In this document: in pieces, positions 7,086 to 57,912 of the stretch
How the letters are laid out: every line of letters starts with the position of its first letter
Position numbering within the stretch: position 1 is the first letter of the stretch
From: Macrostomum lignano
Taxonomy: Eukaryota
Reading direction: 5' to 3'
Length of the DNA: 64,000 nt
NCBI GenBank assembly: GCA_002269645.1
Contig: NIVC01001459.1
Coordinates: forward strand, 1-64,000
Translations under genes and position numbers: made by a program
Notes under the pieces: model-generated
Seen by the model: the letters and a program-made list of their open reading frames with translations, nothing else
Databases searched by the model: none
Told to the model about the DNA's origin: nothing

Positions 7086-8135
7086 TTACTTGTGTCAGAT
7101 AGAGGCATGACTTGTATCAGGAAATGAATAGTTTGTGTCAGATAACTGAATACCCGCTGCCAAACAGCTTCAATAACTTTGTCTCAGTGACAGAAGAATA
7201 CATGAAAACTTAGAAATGTTCAAGACTGCAAGCTCTCTATATGAGCTGTCAATCAAATTATAAGAATGGCATTCTCTAAGAGTCGCTCCTGCCCCCCCCG
7301 CAGTTTAAAAGTACAAGTCAACAAAAAGCTTCCAATACTTTCTACAGAGAATAAATTCTCCTCATTACTAAGTTGATTTCCTTTTAATCTCTTCTGATTA
7401 TGGGATCGCAGATCTATAAACAGAATGCTCGATAATTTGACTCTGCACTGCACTGTACTGTATTTGCGTGGAGGGTTCGGGTTCGGGCAGTTAGGGAGTT
7501 CTCCCCCAGGCACTGAGATGCATGCGACAGAAAAGTGTTGCGATGTGCAGCCAGTCGCGTTGATAGCAGTACAGGGGGACAGAATGTACACGCGCAGTAA
7601 CCCCCTTCTCGCCTTGAATCTTCCTAACCCTCCCGAGTTCCTCCCTTCTCGACTCAATCTAATCTCTCTCCCCTGAACTGTACATTGGAGAATCTATTTG
7701 AGAGGCTAGAATTTGAGTTGGAAGGGCGAGGGCCTGAAAATTCCTAATTCTCTATTCCCAATATAGTGAAGCTCCGTGTGTTTTTATAACTTGCTGCTTG
7801 GGCAGGTCAAACTGCAAAGTCAGAATATCTCTTGTAATAACTTGTTAAAAAGACGAGACTGAATTTGTGCGCGATTTGTTTAATTCTACATTCTCTTTTA
7901 TCTATAGAGAGGCGACGACAAACAGATAACTTCTTCCGGTGAGATTGCTGTTCTCTTTTATTGCTTTCGTATTTTCTTGCTGGTTGGCGAAAATTCTGCA
8001 CCGGAAATTGCTTTGAACTGCCGCGGTTGCTTGTTTGTGCAGACGGGAAGTAGGTAGAATAGAAGCGGTTAAACTACCTGTATAGGTATCCATTTGCCTG
8101 CATGGCAGTTTAGATATGCTATCTGTTTTGTGTGT

Positions 8136-8138
8136 CTG

Positions 8139-8189
<51 letters not shown>

Positions 8190-8190
8190 G

Positions 8191-8249
<59 letters not shown>

Positions 8250-8250
8250 G

Positions 8251-8325
<75 letters not shown>

Positions 8326-8328
8326 GTA

Positions 8329-8405
<77 letters not shown>

Positions 8406-8430
8406 GTGTCTGTCTGTGTGTCTGTCTGTG

Positions 8431-8477
<47 letters not shown>

Positions 8478-8490
8478 GTGTCTGTCTGTG

Positions 8491-8525
<35 letters not shown>

Positions 8526-8526
8526 G

Positions 8527-8613
<87 letters not shown>

Positions 8614-8626
8614 GTGTCTGTCTGTG

Positions 8627-8661
<35 letters not shown>

Positions 8662-8686
8662 GTGTCTGTCTGTCTGTCTGTCTGCC
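8136..8686. repeat. (TCTG)n microsatellite
   Basis: Direct observation. Confidence 0.98.
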
Positions 8687-8802
8687 CATGACTGTCCCGA
8701 TACTGTAAGCCCCTTCTCATTATCACCCATTATCTCATAGCCTGTTTCTCTTGCACCGCATTTTACAACAGGCTCTGATCACAATTGCAAATTGTAAAAC
8801 AG

Positions 8803-10060: not shown

Positions 10061-27392
<17,332 letters not shown>

Positions 27393-27845: not shown

Positions 27846-28544
27846 GCAAGCAGACAAAGGCAGACAGTGCAAAACAGCCACACTTACATGCAAGTAGTCC
27901 GTGGTCAGCCACCTCACAGATCAGTATCACAGAGTTAGAAACTATTATTAGAAAACGTGGAAACCCCCAAAACCAGAGACAGTTGCTGATTAGGAAAATA
28001 TTTATTGAATTTCACCAACTACCAGTGCGTATCGCTCTAATTATTGTTTTTATTGAACTGCATAACCTCTGTGCAATCTGTCTGGCTAATTTTGCTTCCA
28101 GTTCCGCGAGTCTGTCACACTGCCAGCATAGTCATTTTTTTCGCTTTTAAAATAAATAAATTCGAAATTTAACAGACCGACAATCCTCTGCTGCAATAAT
28201 CATAGTTTTTGCAACTCACAATATCGCTGAATTTCTCTGTGTAAATAACAGCTTGCATAGTTGCCAATAATGAGATATATTACATTATATAACATTTAAA
28301 ACTGTTAAGATTTTTATTTATTTACCGGTAGGAAAACATTTTTATTGTTTTTTTCCTGAAACCAAATTCTGCTTTTTATAGAAAAGACGTGCTTTAATCA
28401 AGTTTAAGTACCGCTTTATACTACTAAGCTAGTTCGTGTCAAGTAGTATTTGCGCCTCAAGATTTACTCGTTAATTAATAAATAAATATTAATTATTTTT
28501 GTTCTCATCAATTCCAACGGTAACGCCTGTTCTCTGTGAGTCTT

Positions 28545-29865
28545 ACATTTGTCCTGTCAATGTCCTCTCTGTGTCCTGCCAATGTCCTCCCTGTGTCCTG
28601 CCAATGTCTTCCCTGTGTCCTTCCAATGTCCTCCAGCTGTGTCCTTCCAATGTCCTCCCTGTGTCCTTCCAATGTCCTTCTGTGTCCTTCCAAAGTCCTC
28701 CCTGTGTCCTTCCAATGTCCTCCTTGTGCCCTTCCAATGTCCTCTCTGTGCCCTTCCAATGTCCTCTCTGTGTCCTTCCAATGTCCTCTCTGTGTCCTTC
28801 CAATGTCCTCTCTGTGTCCTGCCAATGTCCTCCCTGTGTCCTTCCAATGTCCTTCTGTGTCCTTCCAAAGTCCTCTCTGTGTCCTTCCAATATCCTCCCT
28901 GTGTCCTGCCAATGTCCTCCAGCTGTGTCCTGCCAATGTCCTCCCTGTGTCCTTCCAATATCCTCCCTGTGTCCTTCCAATATCCTCCCTGTGTCCTGCC
29001 AATGTCCTCCCTGTGTCCTTCCAATGTCCTCCCTGTGTCCTTCCAATATCCTCCCTGTGTCCAGCCAATGTCCTCCCTGTGTCCTGCCAATGTCCTCCCT
29101 GTGTCCTTCCAATGTCCTCCCTGTGTCCTGCCAATATCCTCCCTGTGTCCTGCCAATATCCTCCGTGTCCTGCCAATGTCCTCCAGCTGTGTCCTGCCAA
29201 TGTCCTCCCTGTGTCCTACCAATTTCCTCCCTGTGTCCTACCAATTTCCTCCCTGTGTCCTTCCAATGTCCTTCTGTGTCCTTCCAAAGTCCTCCCTGTG
29301 TCCTTCCAATGTCCTCCTTGTGTCCTTCCAATGTCCTCTCTGTGTCCTTCCAATGTCCTCCCTGTGTCCTTCCAATATCCTCCCTGTGTCCTTCCAATAT
29401 CCTCCCTGTGTCCTTCCAATATCCTCCCTGTGTCCTGCCAATGTCATCCAGCTGTGTCCTGCCAATGTCCTCCCTGTGTCCTACCAATTTCCTCCCTGTG
29501 TCCTTCCAATGTCCTTCTGTGTCCTTCCAAAGTCCTCCCTGTGTCCTTCCAATGTCCTCCTTGTGTCCTTCCAATGTCCTCTCTGTGTCCTTCCAATGTC
29601 CTCCCTGTGTCCTTCCAATATCCTCCCTGTGTCCTTCCAATATCCTCCCTGTGTCCTGCCAATGTCCTCCAGCTGTGTCCTGCCAATGTCCTCCCTGTGT
29701 CCTGCCAATGTCCTCCAGCTGTGTCCTGCCAATGTCCTCCCTGTGTCCTGCCAATGTCATCCCTGTGTCCTGCCAATGTCCTCCCTGTGTCCTTCCAATA
29801 TCCTCCCTGTGTCCTTCCAATATCCTCCCTGTGTCCAGCCAATGTCCTCCCTGTGTCCTGCCAGT
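28545..29865. repeat. About 22-bp minisatellite (GTGTCCTTCCAATGTCCTCCCT)
   Basis: Tandem copies with higher-order variants. Confidence 0.95.
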
Positions 29866-30084
29866 GCCATACCCGTGTCATTTCTGTGTGCCTTCCAGTG
29901 TCATCTTTTAAGTTATCTGGCATACACGTGTCATTCCTCTCATACCTGTGTCATCCTTACGTAGTTTTGGGAGTTTGTGAACTCCAGTATAATTAAACTA
30001 AGTTAATCTAATGAAAATCAGAACATAAAAAGAGTCTAATAAACAGTCGAAGTTCTCACGCACTGGCTCTGGGAAGTGAGCTAG

Positions 30085-31594: not shown

Positions 31595-32563
31595 CTAAAT
31601 ATGGTAGGTAGGCTTGTACATCTGATCAAATCGTCCCAGGTGCTTAGCAACCAGCTCGTCAATCAGGAGGCTGTCCGCCTCATCAAAGTATCCACGCCAG
31701 TCGCCAACCTCGCCGCGTCGATAAAAACCGGTGCCCCGACCTTCGCCCTGGGCAAACAGGTGGCCCATATCGCTGCCTCGGTCGCGCCTCATCCGGTCGA
31801 ATCCAACGGCATCGCAGATTCCAGTCAACAGCTCCTCAGTGAGCTCGGAAGCACCTTCCGGCATCAAGAATCGATCGAGTTTTCGAATGACCTCAGCTGG
31901 ATTCGCTTTCAACTGCTCGTACTCAACTAGGATGACCCGATCAGCTGGCAGCTCTCCGCTAGCCAGAGAGGCAAGCAGCATCTCATTGTGCTCAAAATAC
32001 GAACCACCATCCAAAGTGCCGGGCACAAAGAGACCTTTTAGAAAGGCTTGAAATTTACCACTGTACTTGTAATCGGCAATCCGAGTGTAGTGATGATACA
32101 GCGATACAGCCACATCCTTTGGATTCCTAATTGGGCAGATGATCTTAACGCCATTAGACTGCAAAATCTGCTTTGGCAGAAGCGGCCAAGGCAGGTGACA
32201 ATTCAACAGCCTTGGAGACGGTTGCGCATTCAAGACTGGCAGCTCAACAAACTCAAGCATCAGCTTCTCCTTGTTCACCGGACGCTGATGGCACTGCCGG
32301 CTGAGCAGGAAGTGGCAGATCTCGTGCAGCCAATGGGTGCCGCATTTCAGGTAGGCCCAGATCAGCACATCATCTTGGCGAGGCTGGAATTCGCTTGGAC
32401 AGTGCAGCTTCTCTAATCTGTCTTCGATTCCCGTGAAGTCAACGACATAGTAACCGCGCCACAGGCGGCATTGAACTTCGTTGGCGTCGGTGTCTTGGCG
32501 AGTTACTTTGCCTTCGATCGGGGCGCCAGTTTGCGGGTCTAGATGGGGCGATTTTGTCGCCAT
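31595..32563 (-). CDS. Cytosolic sulfotransferase (SULT1-like), intronless, 322 aa
   Basis: FQPRQDDVLIWAYLKCGTHW (5'-PSB loop), SPRLLNCHLPW (catalytic His), RNPKDVAVSLYHHY (3'-PB), YEQLK, FYRRGEVGDW. Confidence 0.92.
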   Translation of the reverse strand: MATKSPHLDPQTGAPIEGKVTRQDTDANEVQCRLWRGYYVVDFTGIEDRLEKLHCPSEFQPRQDDVLIWAYLKCGTHWLHEICHFLLSRQCHQRPVNKEKLMLEFVELPVLNAQPSPRLLNCHLPWPLLPKQILQSNGVKIICPIRNPKDVAVSLYHHYTRIADYKYSGKFQAFLKGLFVPGTLDGGSYFEHNEMLLASLASGELPADRVILVEYEQLKANPAEVIRKLDRFLMPEGASELTEELLTGICDAVGFDRMRRDRGSDMGHLFAQGEGRGTGFYRRGEVGDWRGYFDEADSLLIDELVAKHLGRFDQMYKPTYHI

Positions 32564-35868: not shown

Positions 35869-38800
35869 TCACTCGCTCGAACCTACATTAAAATCATAAT
35901 CCTGATCGTTTAGCAGCGACTCGATGTAAGCCTCCTCAGGCCAAGGAAAATCCGAATCGAGCATAGCTCCCGGCAGCTGGCTGTCCGGAATGGGGCACCA
36001 GCGGTAGCCCAGCCAGTGCGACACCTTGCCGTAGGGGTCCGCGCCCACCGCCGAGTCGCCTCCTTCGCCAGTGTCTCGGTAAAGACAGCGTTCGGGTACC
36101 TGGGCAGGTGAGGGGGCTGTCTGTCATATATGTCTCATTGTGTCTGTCATATGTGTCTCATTGTGTCTGTCATATGTCTCATTGTGTCTGTCATATGTCT
36201 CATTGTGTCTGTCATATGTGTCATTGTGTCTGTCATATGTGTCTCATTGTGTCTGTCATATGTGTCTCATTGTGTCTGTCATATGTGTCTCATTGTGTCT
36301 GTCATATGTGTCTCATTGTGTCTGTCATATGTCTCATTGTGTCTGTCATATGTGTCTCATTGTGTCTGTCATATGTGTCTCATGGTGTCTGTCATGTGTC
36401 TCATTGTGTCTCATGTGTCTCATGGTGTCTGTCATGTGTCTCATTGTGTCTCATGTGTCTCATTGTGTCTGTCATATGTGTCTCATTGTGTCTGTCATAT
36501 GTCTCATTGTGTCTGTCATATGTGTCTCATTGTGTCTGTCATATGTGTCTCATTGTGTCTGTCATATGTCTCATTGTGTCTGTCATATGTGTCTCATTGT
36601 GTCTGTCATATGTGTCTCATGGTGTCTGTCATGTGTCTCATTGTGTCTCATGTGTCTCATGGTGTCTGTCATATGTCTCATTGTGTCTGTCATATATGTC
36701 TCATTGTGTCTGTCATATATGTCTCATTGTGTCTGTCATATGTGTCTCATTGTGTCTGTCATATGTGTCTCATTGTGTCTGTCATATGTGTCTCATTGTG
36801 TCTGTCATATATGTCTCATTGTGTCTGTCATATGTGTCTCATTGTGTCTGTCATATGTGTCTCATGGTGTCTGTCATGTGTCTCATGTGTTTCATGGTGT
36901 CTGTGATATGTGTCTCATGGTGTCTGTCATATGTGTCTCATGGTGTCTGTCATATGTGTCTCATTGTGTCTGCCTTATCTGTCTCATGGTGTCTGTCTCC
37001 TCTGTCTCATCTGTCTCATGGTGTCTGCCCTACTTGTCTCACAGTGCCTATACAGATAGCATCGATGTTCATCCCCACATGCAACGCTCATCATTCATCA
37101 GATTCCCAATAGTCCAACCTCCAACTTGAGCAGTTCCGGTCCACGCAGCGCAGCCAACCCCACAATGGTATGCGCGCTGACGCAATAGCCATAGACAGCC
37201 AACTCTTCAAGCCTCGGGCACATCCAAGCTATCATCATCAGCGGATCTGGGCGACCCCGGCTCCAAGGCAGGGTCTGCCGACAGCAACAACCGATGTCGT
37301 TCATGCTCTCCACTAGTCTGAGACAGCGCAGCCGGTGAGAGTGCCTGGCGCACACGAAATCAAATAGCGTAGGCGGTAGGCGCTGGCAAAAGTACATGCG
37401 TAGGCGGGTAAGCGGCAGATCGGCAGGCAGGATCGAACGAAAATGTTGCATAGCGCTTGGCGAGTGAAGCTGGAAAAAACAATTTCAAGGGTTAACAACG
37501 TGAGTATGAATGGCTTTTAATGTATGGGCTAAAGCCTCGGCATCTAATTAGTGTCTAGAAAACATCAAGTTACCATGGTAACAGAAGCTTCGCAGCCAAT
37601 TTCGCCTAGAGCGGCCCAACTGCGAATGGCCAGTGCTGGCATCGACGAGGTGACGTCATTATGGACAAATAAGGACAGATGACGCAATAGACCGCCTCGT
37701 GCGAGAGACGCCACCAGCTCCTCAGATACCTTGAAATTAATAAAATAGAATTATATCACTTAAAACAAGAGTAATAAATATATTTTAAAGTCAATCCCTG
37801 GCCCATATCTCAGCTCAGGTAATCAAAATGTCTTAATAACCCTTATCTCAGCTCAGGTAATCAAAATGTCTTAATAACCCTTACCTCAGCTCAGGTAATC
37901 AAAATGTCTTAATAACCCTTATCTCAGCTCAGGTAATCAAAATGTCTTAATAACCCTTATCTCAGCTCAGGTAATCAAAATGTCTAAATAACCCTTATCT
38001 CAGCTCAGGTAATCAAACTGTCTTAATAACCCTTATCTCAGCTCAGGTAATCAAAATGTCTTAATAACCCTTACCTCAGCTCAGGTAATCAAAATGTCTA
38101 AATAACCCTTATCTCAGCTCAGGTAATCAAACTGTCTTAATAACCCTTATCTTAGCTCAGGTAATCAAAATGTCTAACCCTTATCTCAAAACAGGTTACG
38201 AAAATGCCAAACCTGATTCAAGTCCAAACTCAGCCTCGTCAGTCTGAAGCATCTCAGCAAGCGGTTGTCAATAAATGGCACACGAGAACTGATTGGATCA
38301 GATCGCAACGAAGCGAGATGCAGAGATTTCAGACATTCGTGCTGCTGCAAATGATGCAACAATTTGTTCTGCCAACCATCAAAGCAGTCAGTTAGGCCCA
38401 GTGACAGGTGACGCAGTTGATGCGAGTGACAGATGAGAGACAATAGGCTGCGACAGAGTCTGCATGGTTAAGGTTAAAGAGGGAAAATATTACATTTATT
38501 CACAATAACTCATATTTACTTGATTGATTACTTAAACTTTAAATTACATATTCTTATAATTCATAATTCATATTAATCTTTAAACTGTTGGGATTTCAAG
38601 ACTTCTATCAATTGTCAAATTTGTAAACATGGAGTCCATAGATCTTTGAAAATTCCGTGGGTATCTGATTGTAAAATTAAATAGCACTGCAATTCCGATG
38701 CTTATGAAAACTCAGCAAGCTACATATTCAGAATTCAATAGAATGTACATTTATTATTGAATAAAATCCTACAGGATTCTAGATCCAAAGGCCCTAAGCC

Positions 38801-41194
38801 CCTAGCTGTCACACTGCCCAATGGAAATGGTAGGACTTCTATTACCTTGTGTCCTTGGTGATAAACCCAAATGCCATTATCTCTGACAGGAAAAACTAGG
38901 CCTGATTTACTATGCATGATACATACCTAGCACATCAGAAACGTCTATTTAGCTACCAAAGATCACTTGAAGGTGCACCTTTATTATATCTAGCTATAAA
39001 GCCAATCTTCCTTGATATGGTATGGAGGCTCTGCCTTTGAGCAATATGCAAAAGTAAGCCTTGAATATGTTCTATTGATCGTTGCTACATTACAATACAC
39101 ACTAATTATGAACTATGTACTGCCTAGAATATCTGCTAACCAATATTCTAATGATCTACACTGGAGCCCCATCCTTAAGAGCTACTCTATGCCAATGTCA
39201 TCAGATGCTACTAGGCCATTGCATATAGACCCTAGGCCATAATGCACCCATTCCTCTAGTCCTAGCCTTATTGCAACCAAGCAACTATGCTAAAACCAAG
39301 CCTAGATTGCCACTTTGACTGAGTGCCTTATCACTGATCTGAGACCTGCAGGCACTGCATTGATACCTAAAGCTACTGTTGCCTACCTTTCCCACATTTA
39401 CAAAGTGTATGTGCAAAAGGTCTCCTTTCTATATCCTAATCTATAGAAATAATGAAGTAGGGCATGATATCTGTAAAGTGACTACTGATATTAACCTCTT
39501 TTTGTAACTAATCAGGTAAATTTTATTATTTTGTTTTAATATGCATGTTTATTTTTTTAAACTCACAAAATTTGTTTAAAATCATGCTAGCCAATGGCAT
39601 TATAGCTCATCTTATTATATAAAGGCTATCACCTGGCCAAAATAAATAGCATCTAATTTCTTGCTCTCAAAGCTTGCAACTTATCAAAACCAAAGTTTTC
39701 TAATGAACCTTCCACTTACTTCTGTCAGTTATTTTGGGGAAATTCAAAGCCATAAGAGCTTGAAATAGGGAATTATAGAAGTCATGGAGACCTAGAATAG
39801 GAGTCTGAATAGAGAAATATTGAGGTCATAAAGGCCCAGAATACAAATACAAATTAGCTATATTGGCTCAAGTAGGATTAGACAATAGGCACAAAAGTAA
39901 GGGAGATATGAACCAACTAGAAGCCTGTAGCTAAACATCCTTGGTCCCTAGGAAATGCCATTACTTTTAGGATTCAAATTAGAACATAGTGTTTTACCCA
40001 CTCAGGTACTAACCATTACTGTAAACTTTCTAAGAAAGTCAAGCAGAAATAAGTATCAATGGTGAAATTCTTAGCCAAGAATCAAGAACTGCAACTACTT
40101 AGTAGCATTTTTAAGGAATTTATCAGTAGGAAGAAGTAGACCTAGCACAATTGGTAGATTCTATAGGATCTTCATAGAAAAGATTACTAGTACTAGTAAA
40201 ACTTGGTGACAATAATGAGATCATTTAGGAGTGAACAAACAGACCTAGTACAACTTGGTGACAGCTATAGGATAAGTTACTACAGAATAGTCAGATTTTG
40301 CATAATGATAATAAAGAGAAAACATTTACAAAAGTTATAAAAACATAACATAATGTAAGTTAACACATAAGTTATAAAAAATAATAAAAATATAATTCTA
40401 TTAAAGTAAAAAATGCAAGCATTCTATTAACTGCAGTAGGCCTATAGGAATAGAAAGAAAAAAATTATTGCTAACTATTTCTAAATGCAATTATACTAAG
40501 ATTAAGAAGTTAGATGTCATCATCTAGACAATAATTTTAGTATATAGATTTATTTTTCGAAAATCTGCAAAAATCTTACAAGAATCTTGCAAGAATGTTT
40601 GGCTAATGTTTATTAGCCAAACATTATAGAAGTCATAGCCATTAAGACCTACTTTATATATATATATTATATAATCTTGACTACAGCAATGACATAAAGT
40701 TTGGCTAAACTAAAAATGCATGTCCAAAGGTCAATAAAAAAGGTATGATAGGCATAGGCTTATTGTTGAACAAACCTTTGCATTGTGTCACATGAAGACC
40801 ATTCAGAAGTAGCCAACTGAAGACCAGAATTAGAAGGTCTCAATGAGAATGATTGCAAACCATCACTGTTAACTAGAGCGCATGTAGTTGCAATTTCGTA
40901 CAAGGACTCAATACAACCTTCACAGTGTGAATTGAAGTGAACTGTAAGGTGTTGAACAGCTTTTAATGACATAAACTTGTCGAATTGATGAAGAGAAGCA
41001 TGGTGATTTTCATAGCAATCTTGAGCAAAATCTACATAAGCAGATCGCCATATTCTCTTAACAGTGTAGGAAGCTCGACGCCAGTTATAACACACAATAC
41101 CAAAGTTTCTCGCATCAGTGTTTGGCAGTAAACTTAACACTTGCTGTAAGACGTTGTGTGGCAGCAGTTCCCATCTGCTTTGCAAACTTTGCAT
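35869..41194 (-). CDS. FBXO33-like: F-box protein, FBXO33-like, about 467 aa; exons 41194-40776, 38459-38213, 37729-37574, 37469-37119, 36099-35869
   Basis: F-box WELLPHNVLQQVLSLLP..FGIVCYNW. C-terminal DPLMMIAWMCPRLEELAVYGYCVSAHTIVGLAALRGPELLKLEV matches the recalled FBXO33 segment DPLVLLAWRC..GYTVWAHNLIAIARLRGSDLKVLEV; LRHLSLFVHN. All junctions GT-AG and in frame. An extra 5' exon is possible. Confidence 0.85.
36120..37040. repeat. 21-23-bp minisatellite (TGTGTCTGTCATATGTGTCTCAT) in the last FBXO33 intron
   Basis: Tandem copies. Confidence 0.95.
37805..38188. repeat. 38-bp tandem repeat (CTTATCTCAGCTCAGGTAATCAAAATGTCTTAATAACC) in an FBXO33 intron
   Basis: About 10 copies. Confidence 0.95.
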
Positions 41195-43023: not shown

Positions 43024-46000
43024 TCAATAGACGTACATATTACAAGGTTCATAATAAATGTAATCATTATGGCGTCGGAATTGGACCCGGCGCCCGCTAC
43101 AGGTCGCTCTAGGTGATGAGTCCACCGGTTCCTCTGGTTTGGCGGCTTTTTCCGGCTGTGGGTTCGCGGCCGGCTGAACAGCAGGCTTCGGAGACGACAG
43201 TCGCGCCGGCTTGAGGCGATCGATAGAGACAGATTCGGGGTTGCCTGACGGTAGGAAAATAACGAAGAACTTGTCGGTTCGCTGTTTCACGCGATACGGC
43301 CCTGAGTACGGCACCTCAAGCGGCGACCGCACGCGATCGACCCGAACCCAAACGAATTCAGCCATTTTCAGGTCCTTGGGTACGTAGCTTCGTGGTTCGT
43401 GCGTCGGTAGCTCTGTCAGCATTTCCTGCAGCCGTGTCCGAATGTCCGTTGGGGCGAGTGGTTCGGAAGTTAGAACGCGCGGAACCATTGGAAGCTCGCC
43501 GGTAACCCTGGTGAACGGTGATACTCCTTGGTCGTCAGGTGCGACGTGCATCGCGAGAAGAGCCACAGGTAGGTCTTTCAGTCAGTCATTGCCTCGAGCA
43601 GGTAGCATCGTCTTCAGGGTGCGATGGGCTCGCTCGACCTTGCCATTGGTTTGAGGGTGGTACGCCGTTGTGCGTAATCGATGAAAACCAATTGATGTCG
43701 AGACCGAGTAAAAGAATTCTGATTCGAACTGGCGCCCCCGATCAGTGATTACATACAGTGGCACTCCGTAGCGCGAGACCCAGGACGAGACGAATGCATG
43801 GGCGACTACTTCCGCGGTTATTGATTCCAGTGGTGTAGCTTCTAGCCAGCCAGTCGAGCGGTCAACCGTCGTGAGAAGGTAGCGGGCAGACTGGTGGCCA
43901 ATTAGTCTTAGCATTAGCTGGTGGAAGTGGTCCCACAATATCGATGTGTACCGCCTCAAAGCGATTTGATGGTAGTGCGAAGGCCTGTTGCGGGGAGACA
44001 GTGTGGCGAGTGACTTTACTCCGTTGGCAGTCCAGGCAGTTCCAGCAGTAGGTCTTGATGGACTTGCGCATTCCGAGCCAAAAATAACGTTTTGTGATAA
44101 GTTTTGCTGTTTTACGGAAGCCGAAATGACCAAGTCAATGAAAGGAAGCAATCACGGCGTCGCAGAGAGACGGCGGGATGATCGGGCGAGGATACGGCGT
44201 TGACGTCTCACACCAAACGACGACGTCTTTGTCCAGAGAATACGATCGGATATTTGGTGCAGGTGAGAAGGTCGTTGTGCTTCAGCGATACTGGGCAGAT
44301 CAACAGGGAATTTGACTTGATGGGGCAGCGACTACAGCGGCTGTTGCGATGTTGGACACGTGATCATTCACTGGGAAGTCAGGCAGTCGAGAAAGGGCAT
44401 CAGCTATTACGTTGTCTGCACCGCGAATGTACTGGACATCTGCCACGTTCTCGGACAAGACGGTCAAGTAGCGCTGATTGCGATCTGATGTAGTGGTGCG
44501 ATTGGCGTGGAAGGCCTGAGCTAGTGGTTTATGATCAGTGAACAAGGTCACGCTCAGTCTTTCAATGAGGCTGCGGAAGTGCAACATTGCCAGGTACGCC
44601 GCGAGTAGTTCTCGGTCGAACGTGCTGTACGTCCTTTGAGATGATGACAACTTCTTGCTAAACACGCCAAGAGGTGACGTTCCGGTTGAAGAGGTTTGAT
44701 GCAGAACGGCACCAACACAGTCGACTGAGCCATCAGTGTACAGGTAGTACGCAGTACAGTTGGGGTCCAGATGATGCAGCAATAGTCTCTCTGAGAGAAC
44801 TTGTTTGATGTTTTCGAAAGATTTCTGATGCTGCTCTATCCATTGGAAGTTTCTTGCTGACTGTAGTGATGCAGTGAGTAGGTCTTGCAGCGGACAGATG
44901 CGGTCAGCGAAGTTTGGAACGAATCGGCGGTAGAACCCAACGACGCCGAGGAAGCGCCGGAGTGCGTTCGTATCCGTGGGTGTCGGTCAGTCTGATTATT
45001 TGGATCTTCTTATTCCTTCAGGAGTCACGCGGTGGCCAAGCAAATCTACCTCGGATTGAAAGAACTCGCATTTCTTCAAGTGAACTTGCAGTCCGTGTGT
45101 TTGTAGGCGGTCCAAAACCTGTTCCAAATGCGAGTAGTGGTCTTCCCGAGTCTTCGAGAATATCAGGACATCATCGATGTATGAGATGACGAATGTCAGT
45201 CCGTGAAGAACAGAGTCGATCAAGAAGCGTTGAAAAGTTTGTGCTGCATTCCTTAGACCGAAGGGCATGCATGTGCACTCGAACAATCCAAACGGTGTGG
45301 TGATGGCGGTTTAGCAGATCTCTTCTTCTGCGACTGGAATTTGATGAAACGCGCGAACAAGGTCTAACTTTGAAAACACAGTGCTTCCGTGTAGGTACCG
45401 AGTGAAGGTTTGAATATGTGGAACCGGATAGTTGTCCGGCTTTGTTCGTTTGTTCAATTCGCGATAGTCAGCGCATGGACGCCAGCCAGCTTCCCTTGGG
45501 TGCCATGTGGAGGGGTGACGCCCAAGCGCTTGAGGAAGGTCTGAGGTAGCCGGCATCGATTAGCTGCTGAAACTCCTGCTTTGCAGCCTGCAGTTTTGCA
45601 GGGTGCAGTTGCCGGGGTCGCAAGTGAACCGGTTGTCCACTACCAGTGTCTAGCCGGTGAACAGAGTCATGTTTGACCTCTGAAGCTGGCGGAAGGGCTC
45701 CGCCTTCAACGAAAGAAAAACAATCTGCAAACTTTGTTAACAGCGTACTCGTCCGAGAATCCAGGTTGGGTGGCAGTTCTACCGACACAGTGAACGGGCC
45801 ACAATGAACATTTGAAATTGACAAGGTAACAGTAGACAGTCCTGTTTCTGAGTCTCGAACGTGTTTGCGCTGGCAATCGACGACTAACCCATGGTGAGCC
45901 AAGAAGTCGTAACCTACCTTATATGATGGGTTTTACAACTGAGGTCACGAGAAAGGTCCACTGGAAGGCTCGACGCAAACCGCGGATTGAGACATCCAGT

Positions 46001-53628: not shown

Positions 53629-56600
53629 ATGAAATCAGCCGCGAGCAGCAGCTCCGGGGCATCAGAGAGGCCCCGCTCAGCCGTGCGCCAGTTCTGTGGC
53701 TACACGACCGCCCACGGCCTGGGCCGCTTCTCCGAGCAGTCTACCTTTTTCGGCAGGCTCATCTGGGTCTCTTTTCTGCTGGGCACCTACGGCGGCTTTG
53801 TCTATCACCTGTACACCCTGTTCGACAGGTTTGCCCAGGCTCCTGTGCTCACCACAATGACCGTGTCCTCGCTGCCGTTCCAGTTCCCGGATGTGTACAT
53901 CTGCCCGACGCAGGCGAACACCATGAGCAAGGCCATTAAGTCTCTGACCGAATTTGGAGTTACCGATACGGAGTTCCTTACCAAGAGGACCATCGACGAG
54001 AAGATTGGATTTTACGCTTTTGACATTAAAAACAGTGACTTCAACCAGATGACGATGGCACTGCTGAGCGTCCTGGAAAGCACAGAAGAGTCACTGATGG
54101 CGAAGTTTCAGTTTCCAGCACGTGGTGAGCACTCTGCTATTTGAAAACTCTTTGCCAGAGCAGCATTCCATATATCTGAGCTCTTATCTGACAAAATCCC
54201 TATTCAAAATTTGAGCCATGAGAAACTTGCTTTAGGCTTTGAGGATATCGGGCTGCATAAGTTTTCCTCAAAAACATGTTAGAGAACCGAGCCGAGTGTC
54301 GGACAACGCTCTCAGGCGAGGAATACTCTGGCGACGTGAGTTCAGCAGTTGTCTACGGATTTGCCACCATGACAGTCACGTCTGTGAACACCTCGGCATT
54401 CGAGCCCAGTCCGTACAGAGCGCTTAGATCGTGCATACCATGGAATGATGCAGCTCGGATGCTGCATAGTACAAGCGCCAGCCTAGCCAACAGGCTGCTG
54501 TCACTCAAATTTTCCGACGACGAGTCCCGCTGTCGCTCGCCGCCCGGACTGCCGCTGTCTAAGCTTCTGCCGTTTGCATCTCGTGAGTCAAGAAAATTCA
54601 GAGATGAGAAAGTTCTAACAAAAAATAAAGCATCGCACGTTGCTGATTTTCCAGGACCAACGTTACAGCTTATCGACTGCTTCCCAAAAAAGACTGTGGA
54701 TGCATTATTTCTTGTCTGCTCGGAGCTCCAAATCATCACTTATGAATCCTGCGCCGAATGCTGCGCCAGACTCCATTTCCCGTACGTGGCCCTCCAGCCC
54801 CTGTCGTGCCGATGCGGCTTCAGCATCAGCGGCATCAAGAATACGTCCGACACGTGCAACAGTTATTGCAAGAACGACAGCACAAGAGTTTGCGGCTCGG
54901 CTACTAGCGCTACGGTTCTGCAGATTCGGCACAATGGTGAGTGAATCATTCAACCATGTAGGCCCGAGTTCGGAGAGCATCAGGAGGCATTTTAACCGAC
55001 AGCTCAGATCCTATAAATCGTCTGTATTCGTCTAATTTCCTATTTCCTGTTTTTAGCATCAAAGGCGCTGCACATAGGAAACTTCAGCCAGTTGACGCCG
55101 CAGGCGCACGGGCCCTACTGCTTCTTTAGAGATGAGATTGGCAAGCTGAATGCCGGCTTCTGTGAAATCCCCTTTTGCCGAATTTGTAAGTCCAATCCGC
55201 CGCAGTGATGAACTTCATCGCCAAAGTCTCGAGAAAATTAGCTTCTAGGCTCAAACTGCTCACTTTTCAGCCAAATCTAAGACCTACGACTGTGCTGTGA
55301 GCTCATCAGACAAGCACGTAGAGCAGCTGAAGCTCTCTCGGTATACGGGATGGACGAATGTCACCGCCTCCGGCAGACGATGCATGCCTTGGAGTAAATT
55401 GCTGAGAATCGAGGAGCTGGTTAAAACGCGCAGTCAGTACCGCCTGATTTACTTGAAGCTCTCACAATCTAGCAAAAATGCATTCTCAGCTTGAATTCCT
55501 ACCTTCATGCAGTATTCGCCCTGGCTGAGGCTTTGAAAAATATCTACATCCGAGTTCCCGACGAAATCGAGAACAGCGAGGACAACTTCTGCCGCTCAGC
55601 GAGCATTGTGGTCGACTCCGTCCCAAGTTGGGATGAAACTATGATAATGTGAGTTCAAAACTGAGTTCGTGACAAATCTTTGCACGAGTATGAGTTCCAA
55701 GCTTTAAATAAACAGACCAATAAAGCTTTTCTTCCATCTCAGGCGGCACAGCGTCTTTAGCTCAAGCGTGCCAATTTGCATCCCGGAAGACTTTCTCGTC
55801 GGACTGGCGACACCGCAGATTATGGGTTTCGTCTCATTTTTCGAATTGTCGGTAGAGACCTGCGATATACCGAAGTGCTGTGAGTTTTGAGCCTTTTAGA
55901 GAAAAAACTGTAAGACAGCTAATGACTGTTTGAATTTAATCGGCATTTTTAGACACCACTGCCCCCAGCGTGACTAGCGCTATCAGCGATTCGGTTGGCA
56001 GACACCTGCTGGCTCGCCAGTTCGGCAGCGACCTCGGTGTCAGCCTCGTTGAGTGCAGCTTTGCTGGCCAGAAGTGCACCAAGGAAGACTTTGTGAACTT
56101 CGCCCACCCGCAGCTGGGCATGTGTCACCAGTTTCTCAAGCAGCGCTTCACCGCCAACATGAGCAGCACGCAGTTGGCAGAGAGCCAGCTGTCAGTCAAG
56201 TACTTCACGGACTCGACAGACGCAAAGGGACAGACGTTGTCAAATATTGACAAGCTGACGCGGGTGGTGCGAGGAGGCCGCAGTGCTGATGCCAGACAGA
56301 CAGCATTCAAGGTGAGTCTTTGACGGCTGCTTACACTGACACTGAACAGTGCTCACTCTCATACTGAACAGTGCTCACTCTCACACTGAACAGCTGAACA
56401 GTGCTCACTCTCAACTGAACAGTGCTCACTCTCAACTGAACAGTGCTCACTCTCATACTGAACAATACTCACTCTCACACTGAGCAATCACCTGAGCCTC
56501 CATTGCGAACTTGAAGGCCGTCATCGTACCGGAGGGATCCTTCCCATGGGCTTCAAAGAGCATCGACGTGGCCACCGCTCAGCGCATGGACGTGCAGCTT

Positions 56601-57912
56601 AGCTTGAACAAGTACTCGAAACTGTCCAGCGCATCCAGGCCCTGCACGGAGACCACAAAACCGGTCACATATCGACTGCCGTCCTGGAACATGCCACCAT
56701 CGAATGAAAATTTCAAGTACTAATCTGTATCCTGCTTTGGGGAATTAACCTGTGCTAACTTGTGCTAATATCGTTATTACGCTATGAATTCATTTACGTC
56801 GTACTAATACTAACCTTGGCTCCAGAATTGATTGGGCCGCAAAAAGGATCATTTCAACCAACGGCTGGACACGGAAACTGTCGATGCTGCGCGAGACGCT
56901 GCTGAACAACAGCGGCCCAAGGTTAGTAGTGCCAGCAGGTGAAGTGCTCCTGAAGTTATTGTTAACTGCGGAAATTGTCACAACAAACGAAAAGTACTTC
57001 GCAATTTCAGCATCCTGACCGATGCGGGCCGCCTGTTTGACATCCCCGATCGAGGCGATTGCGTCAACACCTACGTCGTGCAGGCCTTCCTTGACAACTG
57101 CAGATGCCTGCCGTCGATTCTGCCCATCAAAGACGAGCTGCTCGCCAATTTCAGTTACTGCTTCAACATCAAGGATGCTGATAACATTTCTGACGACACT
57201 GAGAGGTGCTACATTGATCAGATGTCCCGGATTACACAATATCAATATGAGGCTACAAAACTCTGCAAGCCGCTGTGCAGCACCTTCGAATACACCAGCC
57301 GCTTCATCCCCTACGCCTGGCCGAACCTGCATTTCATGCAGTCGCTCGAGTTCCTGCGGCAGCTGGCTTCGGACTTCGGCTACCGGCACAACATCAGCCG
57401 GCTGAAGGGTGTCTCCAGCCTGTACTATGCATATCTGAGAGCTCAGAGACTCGCAGACACGCCAGTTAGCAAAATCAGCAGCGCCGAGTCTCAGAGCTTT
57501 GATGTGGAGCTGACGGCGCTGGAAAACCGGCTGGCTCAGCTAACCGTCCAGGCTGAGCGGCCATTCGGCCAGGAGGTCTCGGAGGAGCCGGCCTACCCCG
57601 CCAAGAACCTCCTGGCCGACATTGGAGGTAAGAAATCATTTTGAGTGGTTTTGGCATCGGCAGCGCGAATTCCGTCAGTTTCAATCGGATTGCTTTTCAG
57701 GCGCCCTGGGTCTCTGGTCCGGCATCTCCATTCTCACTGTCTGCGAGTTGCTGGAGCTCTTCATCTACCTGGGGCAGGAGCTGGTCCTGAGGATGCGGCG
57801 ACAGCCCTCCAAGAGGCAGCCAGGAGACAACAACGAGCCTGACTTACCGTCTAAGGTAGAGATGGAGTCGGAGATGAACGCGGCTGAGAATGAAAGAGTA
57901 ACTCATTTTTGA
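53629..57912 (+). CDS. DEG/ENaC (ASC family) channel with kringle and WSC insertions, about 1,000 aa; exons 53629-54124, 54262-54936, 55057-55185, 55271-55393 (or 55432), 55513-55648, 55743-55879, 55953-56311, 56517-56716, 57011-57627, 57701-57912
   Basis: FCGYTTAHG pre-TM1 motif, TM1, FPDVYIC, CSFAGQKC..DF..GMCHQF, cysteine-rich thumb (DC..DNCRC..YC..C..CKPLC), LLADIGGALGLWSGISILTVCELLEL (TM2, GxS filter). Exon lengths sum to 3,084 nt with GT-AG junctions. A possible extra 72-bp in-frame intron at 54583-54654. Confidence 0.88.
56335..56485. repeat. About 20-22-bp repeat (ACTGAACAGTGCTCACTCTC) in an ENaC intron
   Basis: About 6 copies. Confidence 0.85.

Follow-up and report, generated by a model that had tools for sequence, protein, structure and literature searches.

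Globular domains can be nested within the sequence of other domains, as in laminins, where an L4 domain interrupts a laminin EGF-like module, and in the integrin beta subunit, with its nesting of PSI, hybrid and I-like domains. In ion channels of the DEG/ENaC superfamily, the finger region of several members mediates the action of ligands, protons or proteases on gating. Kringle and WSC modules occur together in the cell-surface proteins Kremen1 and Kremen2 (Kringle-WSC-CUB). The Kremen1 kringle (KR) and WSC domains are tightly packed and jointly form the DKK-binding face, and the disulfides of the kringle are C32-C114, C55-C95 and C84-C109 (PMC5014086). Here, we report the analysis of a 64,000-nucleotide stretch of the genome of the flatworm Macrostomum lignano (GenBank assembly GCA_002269645.1, contig NIVC01001459.1, positions 1 to 64,000 of the forward strand; hereafter, the window) that contains a predicted gene for a DEG/ENaC channel subunit with two kringle-derived domains. 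The first of these, kringle 1, is very probably a discontinuous domain with a complete WSC domain, itself independently folding, nested in the loop between its third and fourth cysteines. The best overall explanation of the evidence, to which we assign a probability of roughly three in four, is a kringle split by a nested WSC in a divergent DEG/ENaC subunit.

The gene was rebuilt by three-frame translation with frame-keeping GT-AG junctions, each of which was compared with homologous proteins. Its features, in window coordinates and with the evidence in brackets, are the following (pLDDT, predicted local distance difference test; TM, transmembrane segment; nt, nucleotides):

53629..57912, + strand: whole gene, predicted 12-exon DEG/ENaC (amiloride-sensitive sodium channel family) subunit of 1041 amino acids (GT-AG introns, Pfam ASC, PDB matches, motifs)
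53629..54124, + strand: exon 1, N-terminus, TM1 and start of the extracellular domain, ending in phase 1 (aligns to FaNaC 67-154)
54283..54582, + strand: exon 2 (300 nt, phase 1-1), N-terminal part of kringle 1 with Cys1-Cys3 (hhalign register, pLDDT 75-92)
54583..54654, + strand: intron 2 (72 nt, phase 1, GTGAGT...CAG), 24 open codons
54655..54936, + strand: exon 3 (282 nt, phase 1-1), complete WSC with 10 cysteines (Pfam WSC, Foldseek, cysteine conservation)
54937..55056, + strand: intron 3 (120 nt, phase 1)
55057..55185, + strand: exon 4 (129 nt, phase 1-1), C-terminal part of kringle 1 with Cys4-Cys6 (C-half of Pfam Kringle, PDB and Darwinula matches, pLDDT 83-85)
55271-55432, 55513-55648 and 55743-55879, + strand: exons 5-7, kringle 2 (sub-threshold Pfam Kringle match, profile against PDB)
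55953..56311, + strand: exon 8, where the channel extracellular domain resumes, with the ECSFAGQKCTKEDF motif (aligns to FaNaC 196-226)

The channel identity of the protein is clear from its ends. Pfam ASC (PF00858) matches at both of them (E-value 3e-17; 63 bits against a cut-off of 23.6), and the channel parts match FaNaC, ENaC, ASIC and pickpocket (PPK26) sequences in the PDB. The translation further contains the HG motif (TTAHGLGRF) and the G-I-S motif of TM2 (LWSGISILT), so that the family match, the two TMs, the HG motif and the G-x-S in TM2 by which DEG/ENaC membership is judged are all present. About 460 residues separate the stretch aligned to FaNaC 67-154 from the CxFxxxxC motif (FaNaC 196-226); the corresponding distance in FaNaC is about 40 residues. 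Exons 2-7 account for 1146 nt, or 382 residues, which constitute a kringle[WSC]-kringle module (54283-55879). As read from the sequence alignment, the finger region of the channel (FaNaC ~154 to ~196) is replaced by this 382-residue module of two kringle-derived domains. The exon 2-7 set is bounded on both sides by phase-1 introns and is thus itself a symmetric 1-1 set in the finger-coding part of a DEG/ENaC gene.

We treat intron 2 as a real intron because no homologue has its 24 codons. It contains no stop codon, and its retention would add 24 residues between the N-terminal part of the kringle and the WSC with the frame kept; one public model (P0005) has an apparent retained intron at the equivalent junction. 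The window contains one copy only of the channel gene, with no tandem paralogue. Intron 8 consists mostly of a tandem repeat of 21-22 nt (CTGAACAGTGCTCACTCTCA..., about 6 copies) at 56339-56483. A 199-residue antisense open reading frame (ORF; 56790-57389, - strand) that overlaps exon 11 probably reflects the G+C richness of the coding strand and does not represent a gene.

Six cysteines and the accompanying kringle motifs can be traced across exons 2 and 4. Cys1 (residue 171, 54297-54299), Cys2 (residue 216, 54432-54434) and Cys3 (residue 249, 54531-54533) are encoded by exon 2, and Cys4 (residue 381, 55119-55121), Cys5 (residue 395, 55161-55163) and Cys6 (residue 400, 55176-55178) by exon 4. 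The motifs are CIPW at Cys2 (CxxW), CRSPPG at Cys3 (ending at 54548), GPYCFF at Cys4 and CEIPFC at Cys5-Cys6. A preliminary description of this DNA had proposed a WSC nested in kringle 1 at 54297-55178, which is precisely the span from the first base of Cys1 to the last base of Cys6. It had placed Cys1-Cys3 in exon 2 and the whole WSC between the kringle halves, both of which hold, and had assigned Cys4-Cys6 to exon 3, which has to be corrected: they belong to exon 4, and the WSC has an exon of its own.

The inter-cysteine distances in kringle 1 are 44, 32, 131, 13 and 4 residues. For the Kremen1 kringle (C32, C55, C84, C95, C109 and C114), the corresponding counts are 22, 28, 10, 13 and 4 (PMC5014086), so that the Cys4-Cys5 and Cys5-Cys6 spacings of the two domains are the same. 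Between Cys1 and Cys2, within exon 2, kringle 1 carries an extra 23-residue hairpin. The Cys3-Cys4 gap of 131 residues, compared with 10-11 in the surface loop between CRNPD and PWC of ordinary kringles, takes the domain outside the canonical loop lengths (about 80 residues in total). The region thus contains three cysteines in the exon-2 flank, ten in the WSC and three in the exon-4 flank.

The identity of the domain encoded by exon 3 is supported by both sequence and predicted structure. Pfam WSC (PF01822) matches residues 274-346 (54678-54896) over profile positions 3-81 of 82, with 32.0-36.2 bits against a cut-off of 27.8, and the match lies wholly between Cys3 and Cys4 of kringle 1. In a Foldseek comparison of the AlphaFold model with the PDB, yeast Wsc1 (7pz2) came first (probability 1.00, template modelling score 0.61-0.64 on target length) and Kremen1 next (probability 0.93-0.98); the fold is WSC/PAN-like, and phmmer also connects the sequence to 7pz2 (E-value 9e-4). 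Ten cysteines are conserved here, compared with eight in the canonical WSC (four disulfides in Kremen1), and are likely to comprise the canonical eight and an additional pair. In the Kremen1 WSC, strands beta1 and beta5 run side by side in antiparallel orientation (PMC5014086), so the termini of the domain should be close to each other, as insertion requires. A WSC with neighbouring first and last strands would leave and re-enter the loop without straining the host kringle.

Judged from sequence, the homology of the two flanks to kringles is convincing only by profile-profile comparison. For this comparison, the WSC was deleted from the family alignment (3 sequences at first, 7 later), and the resulting profile was aligned by hhalign with nine reference kringles, in the sequences of which small errors are possible. 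The probability of the match was 87.9% (P-value 3.3e-6) and then 91.6% (P-value 8e-7). The alignment covers Cys2-Cys6 in register, with QCxxW and CRxPPG set against CQxW and CRNPD of the kringles, and its sole long gap coincides with the excision site. The real score was 40.3, compared with a mean of 11.5 (standard deviation 2.8, maximum 22.4) for 200 column-shuffled templates and 9.9 for a reversed template. When the WSC was retained, only the last 22 columns, that is, the C-half, were aligned, at 60%; deletion of the WSC therefore restores the kringle, at profile-profile sensitivity only. That the flanks align as one kringle once the WSC is removed supports the earlier suggestion that the WSC sits within the loop, and not in tandem as in Kremen.

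Exon 4 has independent matches among kringles. We performed an exhaustive hidden Markov model (HMM) search of 1.84 billion representative proteins, using a profile made from exon-wise fragments (hmmbuild kept 350 match states), and examined the best 150 matches along with fetched cluster members. The best matches outside the family were multi-kringle proteins of the ostracod Darwinula, Kringle-named by their sources, the kringle C-halves of which are matched by exon 4; they were hit repeatedly over profile positions ~190-257, with 20-31 bits per repeat. These positions comprise the C-half of kringle 1 and the N-half of kringle 2, so that the matched region resembles the junction of two tandem kringles.

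Structure prediction is consistent with a single folded unit. AlphaFold2, run with 11 family-only sequences, yielded a model with a mean pLDDT of 72.2 and a predicted template modelling score (pTM) of 0.62; because the alignment contained no outside kringle or WSC sequences, nothing forced a kringle fold in this model. The pLDDT was 75-92 over the Cys2-Cys3 part (model residues 41-100), 62-81 for most of the WSC, with one 10-residue block at 52, and 83-85 over a beta-hairpin of about 20 residues that carries Cys4 and Cys5. Confidence of this order in what would otherwise be an isolated 20-residue hairpin, taken together with the pTM, suggests that the predicted Cys4-Cys5 hairpin is packed against the remainder of the model. 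The 23-residue insert between Cys1 and Cys2 was predicted as a hairpin. After the WSC structures, kringles were the only recurring fold among the Foldseek matches, namely those of ROR1, ROR2, plasminogen K2, apo(a) KIV and neurotrypsin. We consider it likely that the exon-2 and exon-4 flanks fold into one kringle-like unit: the two parts would pack as one kringle-like fold with inferred disulfides 1-6, 2-4 and 3-5, from which the WSC would project.

Several observations weigh against a split kringle. The Pfam Kringle profile (PF00051, curated cut-off 34.3 bits) does not recognize kringle 1 in the intact protein, where the Pfam scan reports only ASC, WSC and a sub-threshold kringle 2. The preliminary description had anticipated such an escape from standard scans, and public entries indeed show WSC and ASC alone; the rescan after in silico deletion of the WSC that it had proposed stayed sub-threshold, reaching 14.3 bits (E-value 0.05) over profile positions 49-79, the C-half only. 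Following the same deletion, an E-value of at most 1 to Pfam Kringle was obtained for three of seven family members. Against PDB sequences, the top matches of the WSC-deleted family HMM, the kringles of ROR1, plasminogen and neurotrypsin, had non-significant E-values of 0.3-3.7; talin matches in the kringle 1 comparison (E-value about 0.8-0.95) were discarded as noise. The Cys1-Cys2 stretch, with its 23-residue insertion, lies outside every significant alignment. On the structural side, AlphaFold with a 4-sequence alignment gave an unusable model (pLDDT 31), two helices are predicted between Cys2 and Cys3, in place of the loops of canonical kringles, and the Foldseek kringle alignments span only 28-40 residues with probabilities of 0.06-0.23. 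Matches this short are to be expected, since a sequential aligner cannot bridge the insert in a discontinuous domain.

Three of these points, that is, the confinement of the Pfam and HMM-to-PDB matches to the C-half, the helices and the short Foldseek matches, would fit an arrangement in which the flanks are not one domain at all: exon 2 would encode an unrelated, partly helical cysteine-containing domain with motifs that are convergent or relics, and exon 4 a leftover half-kringle fused to kringle 2. We regard this as highly improbable, given that hhalign places the CxxW and CRxPPG of exon 2 together with Cys4-Cys6 of exon 4 in kringle register, far above the shuffled controls; that separate flanks, with three cysteines each, would expose unpaired thiols outside the cell; that the six cysteines are invariant in every family member covering the region; and that both flanks have high pLDDT in a model with a pTM of 0.62. 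The predicted helices between Cys2 and Cys3 indicate that the N-lobe is remodelled, and the model accordingly depicts kringle 1 as a remodelled, kringle-derived domain and not as a textbook kringle.

The nested layout was found only in about six clusters of Macrostomum lignano paralogues by the exhaustive search and cluster look-ups (P0001/P0005; P0002-4/P0008; P0007/P0153; P0009/P0157; P0010/P0161; P0012/P0028). We noted it in P0001, P0002, P0005, P0007/P0153, P0009/P0157 and P0010/P0161, down to ~33% identity. Wherever a member spans this region, the kringle N-part is followed by the WSC, the kringle C-part and kringle 2, with Cys3-Cys4 distances of 118-153 residues. All six cysteine columns of kringle 1 are invariant in these proteins; nine of the ten WSC cysteine columns are fully conserved, the P0007 group having a serine at the remaining one and extra cysteines nearby. 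The mean pairwise identity is 45% for the N-part, 32% for the WSC and 46% for the C-part, so by sequence comparison, the WSC is diverged yet clearly maintained in the family. The window protein itself is absent from the databases. Its nearest matches all come from Macrostomum lignano, with a best identity of 54% over the module and 62% over a longer alignment. Channel sequence was combined with kringle and WSC only in Macrostomum proteins among the best 150 matches and the fetched cluster members. In public databases these proteins are named 'WSC domain-containing protein' or 'amiloride-sensitive sodium channel' and carry Pfam PF01822 and PF00858 only. With the family profile, a word-indexed search of proteins retrieved two fragments only.

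No family member lacking the WSC was found among the 1.84 billion representatives, and such a protein should have been seen, because it would score far above the list cut-off. The comparison of relatives for forms without the WSC, which had been suggested beforehand, thus yielded none among the covering members. This result bears on the notion that exon 3 is an optional cassette, the skipping of which rejoins the kringle in frame, such that the nested form would be a minor isoform or a construct of annotation. Exons 2, 3 and 4 are all symmetric, and skipping any of them keeps the frame. Public Macrostomum lignano models also vary in the short C-half exon: P0002 and the near-identical P0003, P0004 and P0008 differ in the 23-residue C-half of kringle 1 (GGPYCFF...VPYC), which is present in the former and absent from the other three. 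This absence, a further point against an intact split kringle, reflects either a tiny symmetric exon overlooked by the predictor or an exon that is truly skipped; its loss would leave three cysteines unpaired. The WSC, however, is present in every covering homologue and in two independent annotations (UniProt A0A1I8... and NCBI PAA...), and exon 3 with its phases is conserved in a paralogous locus (L001). Even at pairwise identities of 24-42%, the ten cysteines and the motifs of the WSC persist, which argues for selection at the protein level, and a rejoined kringle would still hold about 38 extra loop residues. An optional exon 3 therefore appears quite improbable.

Kringle 2 matches Pfam Kringle with an E-value of 3.4e-6 and 27.7 bits, under the cut-off of 34.3, and its family profile retrieves 50 PDB matches, all of them kringle proteins (best E-value 4.5e-6). 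By hhalign, it reaches 92.8%, with only 26 columns aligned, and UniProt names one paralogue fragment covering it 'Kringle domain-containing protein'. It has 30 residues between Cys3 and Cys4, 19-20 of them extra, in agreement with the shorter insertion that had been noted in the same loop, and 27 residues between Cys4 and Cys5. An hhalign comparison of kringle 1 with kringle 2 of the same family gave no meaningful match (4%), as their sequences have diverged too far. The Cys3-Cys4 loop of kringle 2 also contains an intron; because this intron is in phase 2, a shared ancestral intron in the loops of kringles 1 and 2 cannot be claimed.

The exon structure suggests how the nesting arose. Exons 2, 3 and 4 (300, 282 and 129 nt) each enter and leave in phase 1, and a paralogue with ~33% identity over the region (P0010; contig NIVC01000440.1, locus L001) has the same three exons with 303, 300 and 123 nt, all phase 1-1. 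Class 1-1 modules, as a rule, enter pre-existing phase-1 introns (PMC3927616). We find it probable that the nesting originated by exon insertion, with the WSC exon entering a phase-1 intron of the Cys3-Cys4 loop before the family radiation, since a whole module on a single symmetric exon between introns of the same phase is the signature of insertion. The host kringle would have been already divergent at that time.

The known kringle-WSC tandem of metazoans (Kremen) provides for a different history, in which a Kremen-like kringle-WSC-kringle-kringle lost the C-half of its first kringle and the N-half of its second, leaving kringle 1 as a chimera. Kremen1 ranks second among the classes of structural match, and symmetric exons ease in-frame losses. 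Nevertheless, this route requires two precise losses in place of a single insertion, the search of 1.84 billion representatives yielded no intermediate with a full kringle plus WSC, and the WSC coincides with exactly one symmetric exon between same-phase introns, a classic insertion signature (PMC3927616). We consider a tandem origin unlikely and favour insertion of the WSC exon.

With regard to function, the lysine-binding site of plasminogen kringles includes Asp55/Asp57. The insert in kringle 1 presumably takes the position of these residues, and because it replaces them, a classical lysine pocket is unlikely. Nesting would lock the WSC against the kringle, and, by analogy with Kremen1 KR-WSC, kringle 1 and its nested WSC would jointly form a single composite binding surface for a protein or glycan outside the cell. 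Binding of a ligand, or tethering, at the finger region could then modulate or tether channel gating. It is possible, if rather doubtful, that the module serves as a ligand- or matrix-binding head on the finger region, as the comparison with Kremen1 would suggest. A bolder version, to which we give only a slim chance, is that the kringle[WSC]-kringle module acts as a matrix- or glycan-binding tether that makes the channel ligand- or force-gated, with the WSC and half-kringle exons as splice-selectable cassettes by which the head would change from one form to another, and would constitute the first natural kringle host scaffold.

The implications extend beyond this channel. Kringles are a textbook case of the compact and mobile 1-1 module, which is shuffled as a unit; here, the Cys3-Cys4 loop tolerates a 93-residue domain through the radiation of a family. 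A kringle scaffold can, on this reading, act as a host, with exon shuffling occurring within a module instead of between modules, and the case illustrates how discontinuous domains escape HMM annotation. A lineage-specific DEG/ENaC subfamily in which the finger is replaced by adhesion- or recognition-type modules offers a natural experiment on the coupling of the head to gating, in a flatworm that is amenable to RNA interference and transgenesis.

The remainder of the window is repeat-rich and contains several unrelated features. An intronless 322-residue ORF at 31595-32563 (- strand) encodes a cytosolic-type sulfotransferase (Pfam Sulfotransfer_1, E-value 4e-42), the exact product of which is absent from the public collection. 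RhoGAP and START domain exons at 24295-27392 (+ strand), with a long TDRQ-coding array of tetranucleotide type between two RhoGAP pieces, suggest a DLC/STARD-like gene. Remnants of long terminal repeat retrotransposon pol (RNase H and integrase core) in separate broken ORFs at 43024-45902 (- strand) are probably a degraded element, and a 144-residue ORF at 40760-41194 (- strand) contains an F-box (Pfam F-box-like, E-value 1.6e-7). Very long micro- and minisatellite arrays (826-2382, 7900-8740, 11400-12660, 20380-21400, 28500-29990 and 36100-37130) together account for much of the window, and they give rise to spurious ORFs on both strands, in several frames each. An Rfam scan of the window gave no match, and a sub-threshold Pfam line (toxin-subunit family, E-value 0.22, no stretch passing) was dismissed as chance noise.

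Among described systems, the laminin L4 and integrin arrangements resemble this locus in that a globular domain sits in a loop of a small host (disulfide-bonded or a beta-sandwich) that is split in sequence and not in space; they differ in that the host here is a kringle and the guest a WSC. No description of a domain inserted into a kringle was found in the literature searched, and we know of none. With the class 1-1 module shuffling formulated by Patthy, the locus shares the kringle, a classic 1-1 module, and phase-1 introns flanking the WSC exon, the kringle 1 exons and the exon 2-7 set. Such shuffling usually places modules between domains, whereas the recipient intron here lies inside a module. 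Other DEG/ENaC channels with elaborated fingers (ENaC, ASIC, FaNaC and nematode degenerins) belong to the same superfamily, and the extra sequence of the window protein is located in what is their variable finger region; the literature searched contained no description of a DEG/ENaC with kringle or WSC modules, nor do we know of one.

Kremen1 and Kremen2 resemble the window protein in having both module types on a cell-surface protein, and Kremen1 is one of the top structural matches. In Kremen, however, the kringle is complete before the WSC begins, whereas here the kringle encloses the WSC between its Cys3 and Cys4; the Kremen WSC has 8 cysteines compared with 10; and Kremen is a type I receptor with a CUB domain, whereas the window protein is an ion channel in which Pfam reports no CUB, and it does not qualify as a member of the Kremen family. 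The kringle as host of an inserted domain, shuffling inside a module and a DEG/ENaC subfamily with kringle and WSC modules appear to be undescribed, whereas domain nesting, 1-1 exon shuffling and the kringle-WSC pairing of Kremen are already known.

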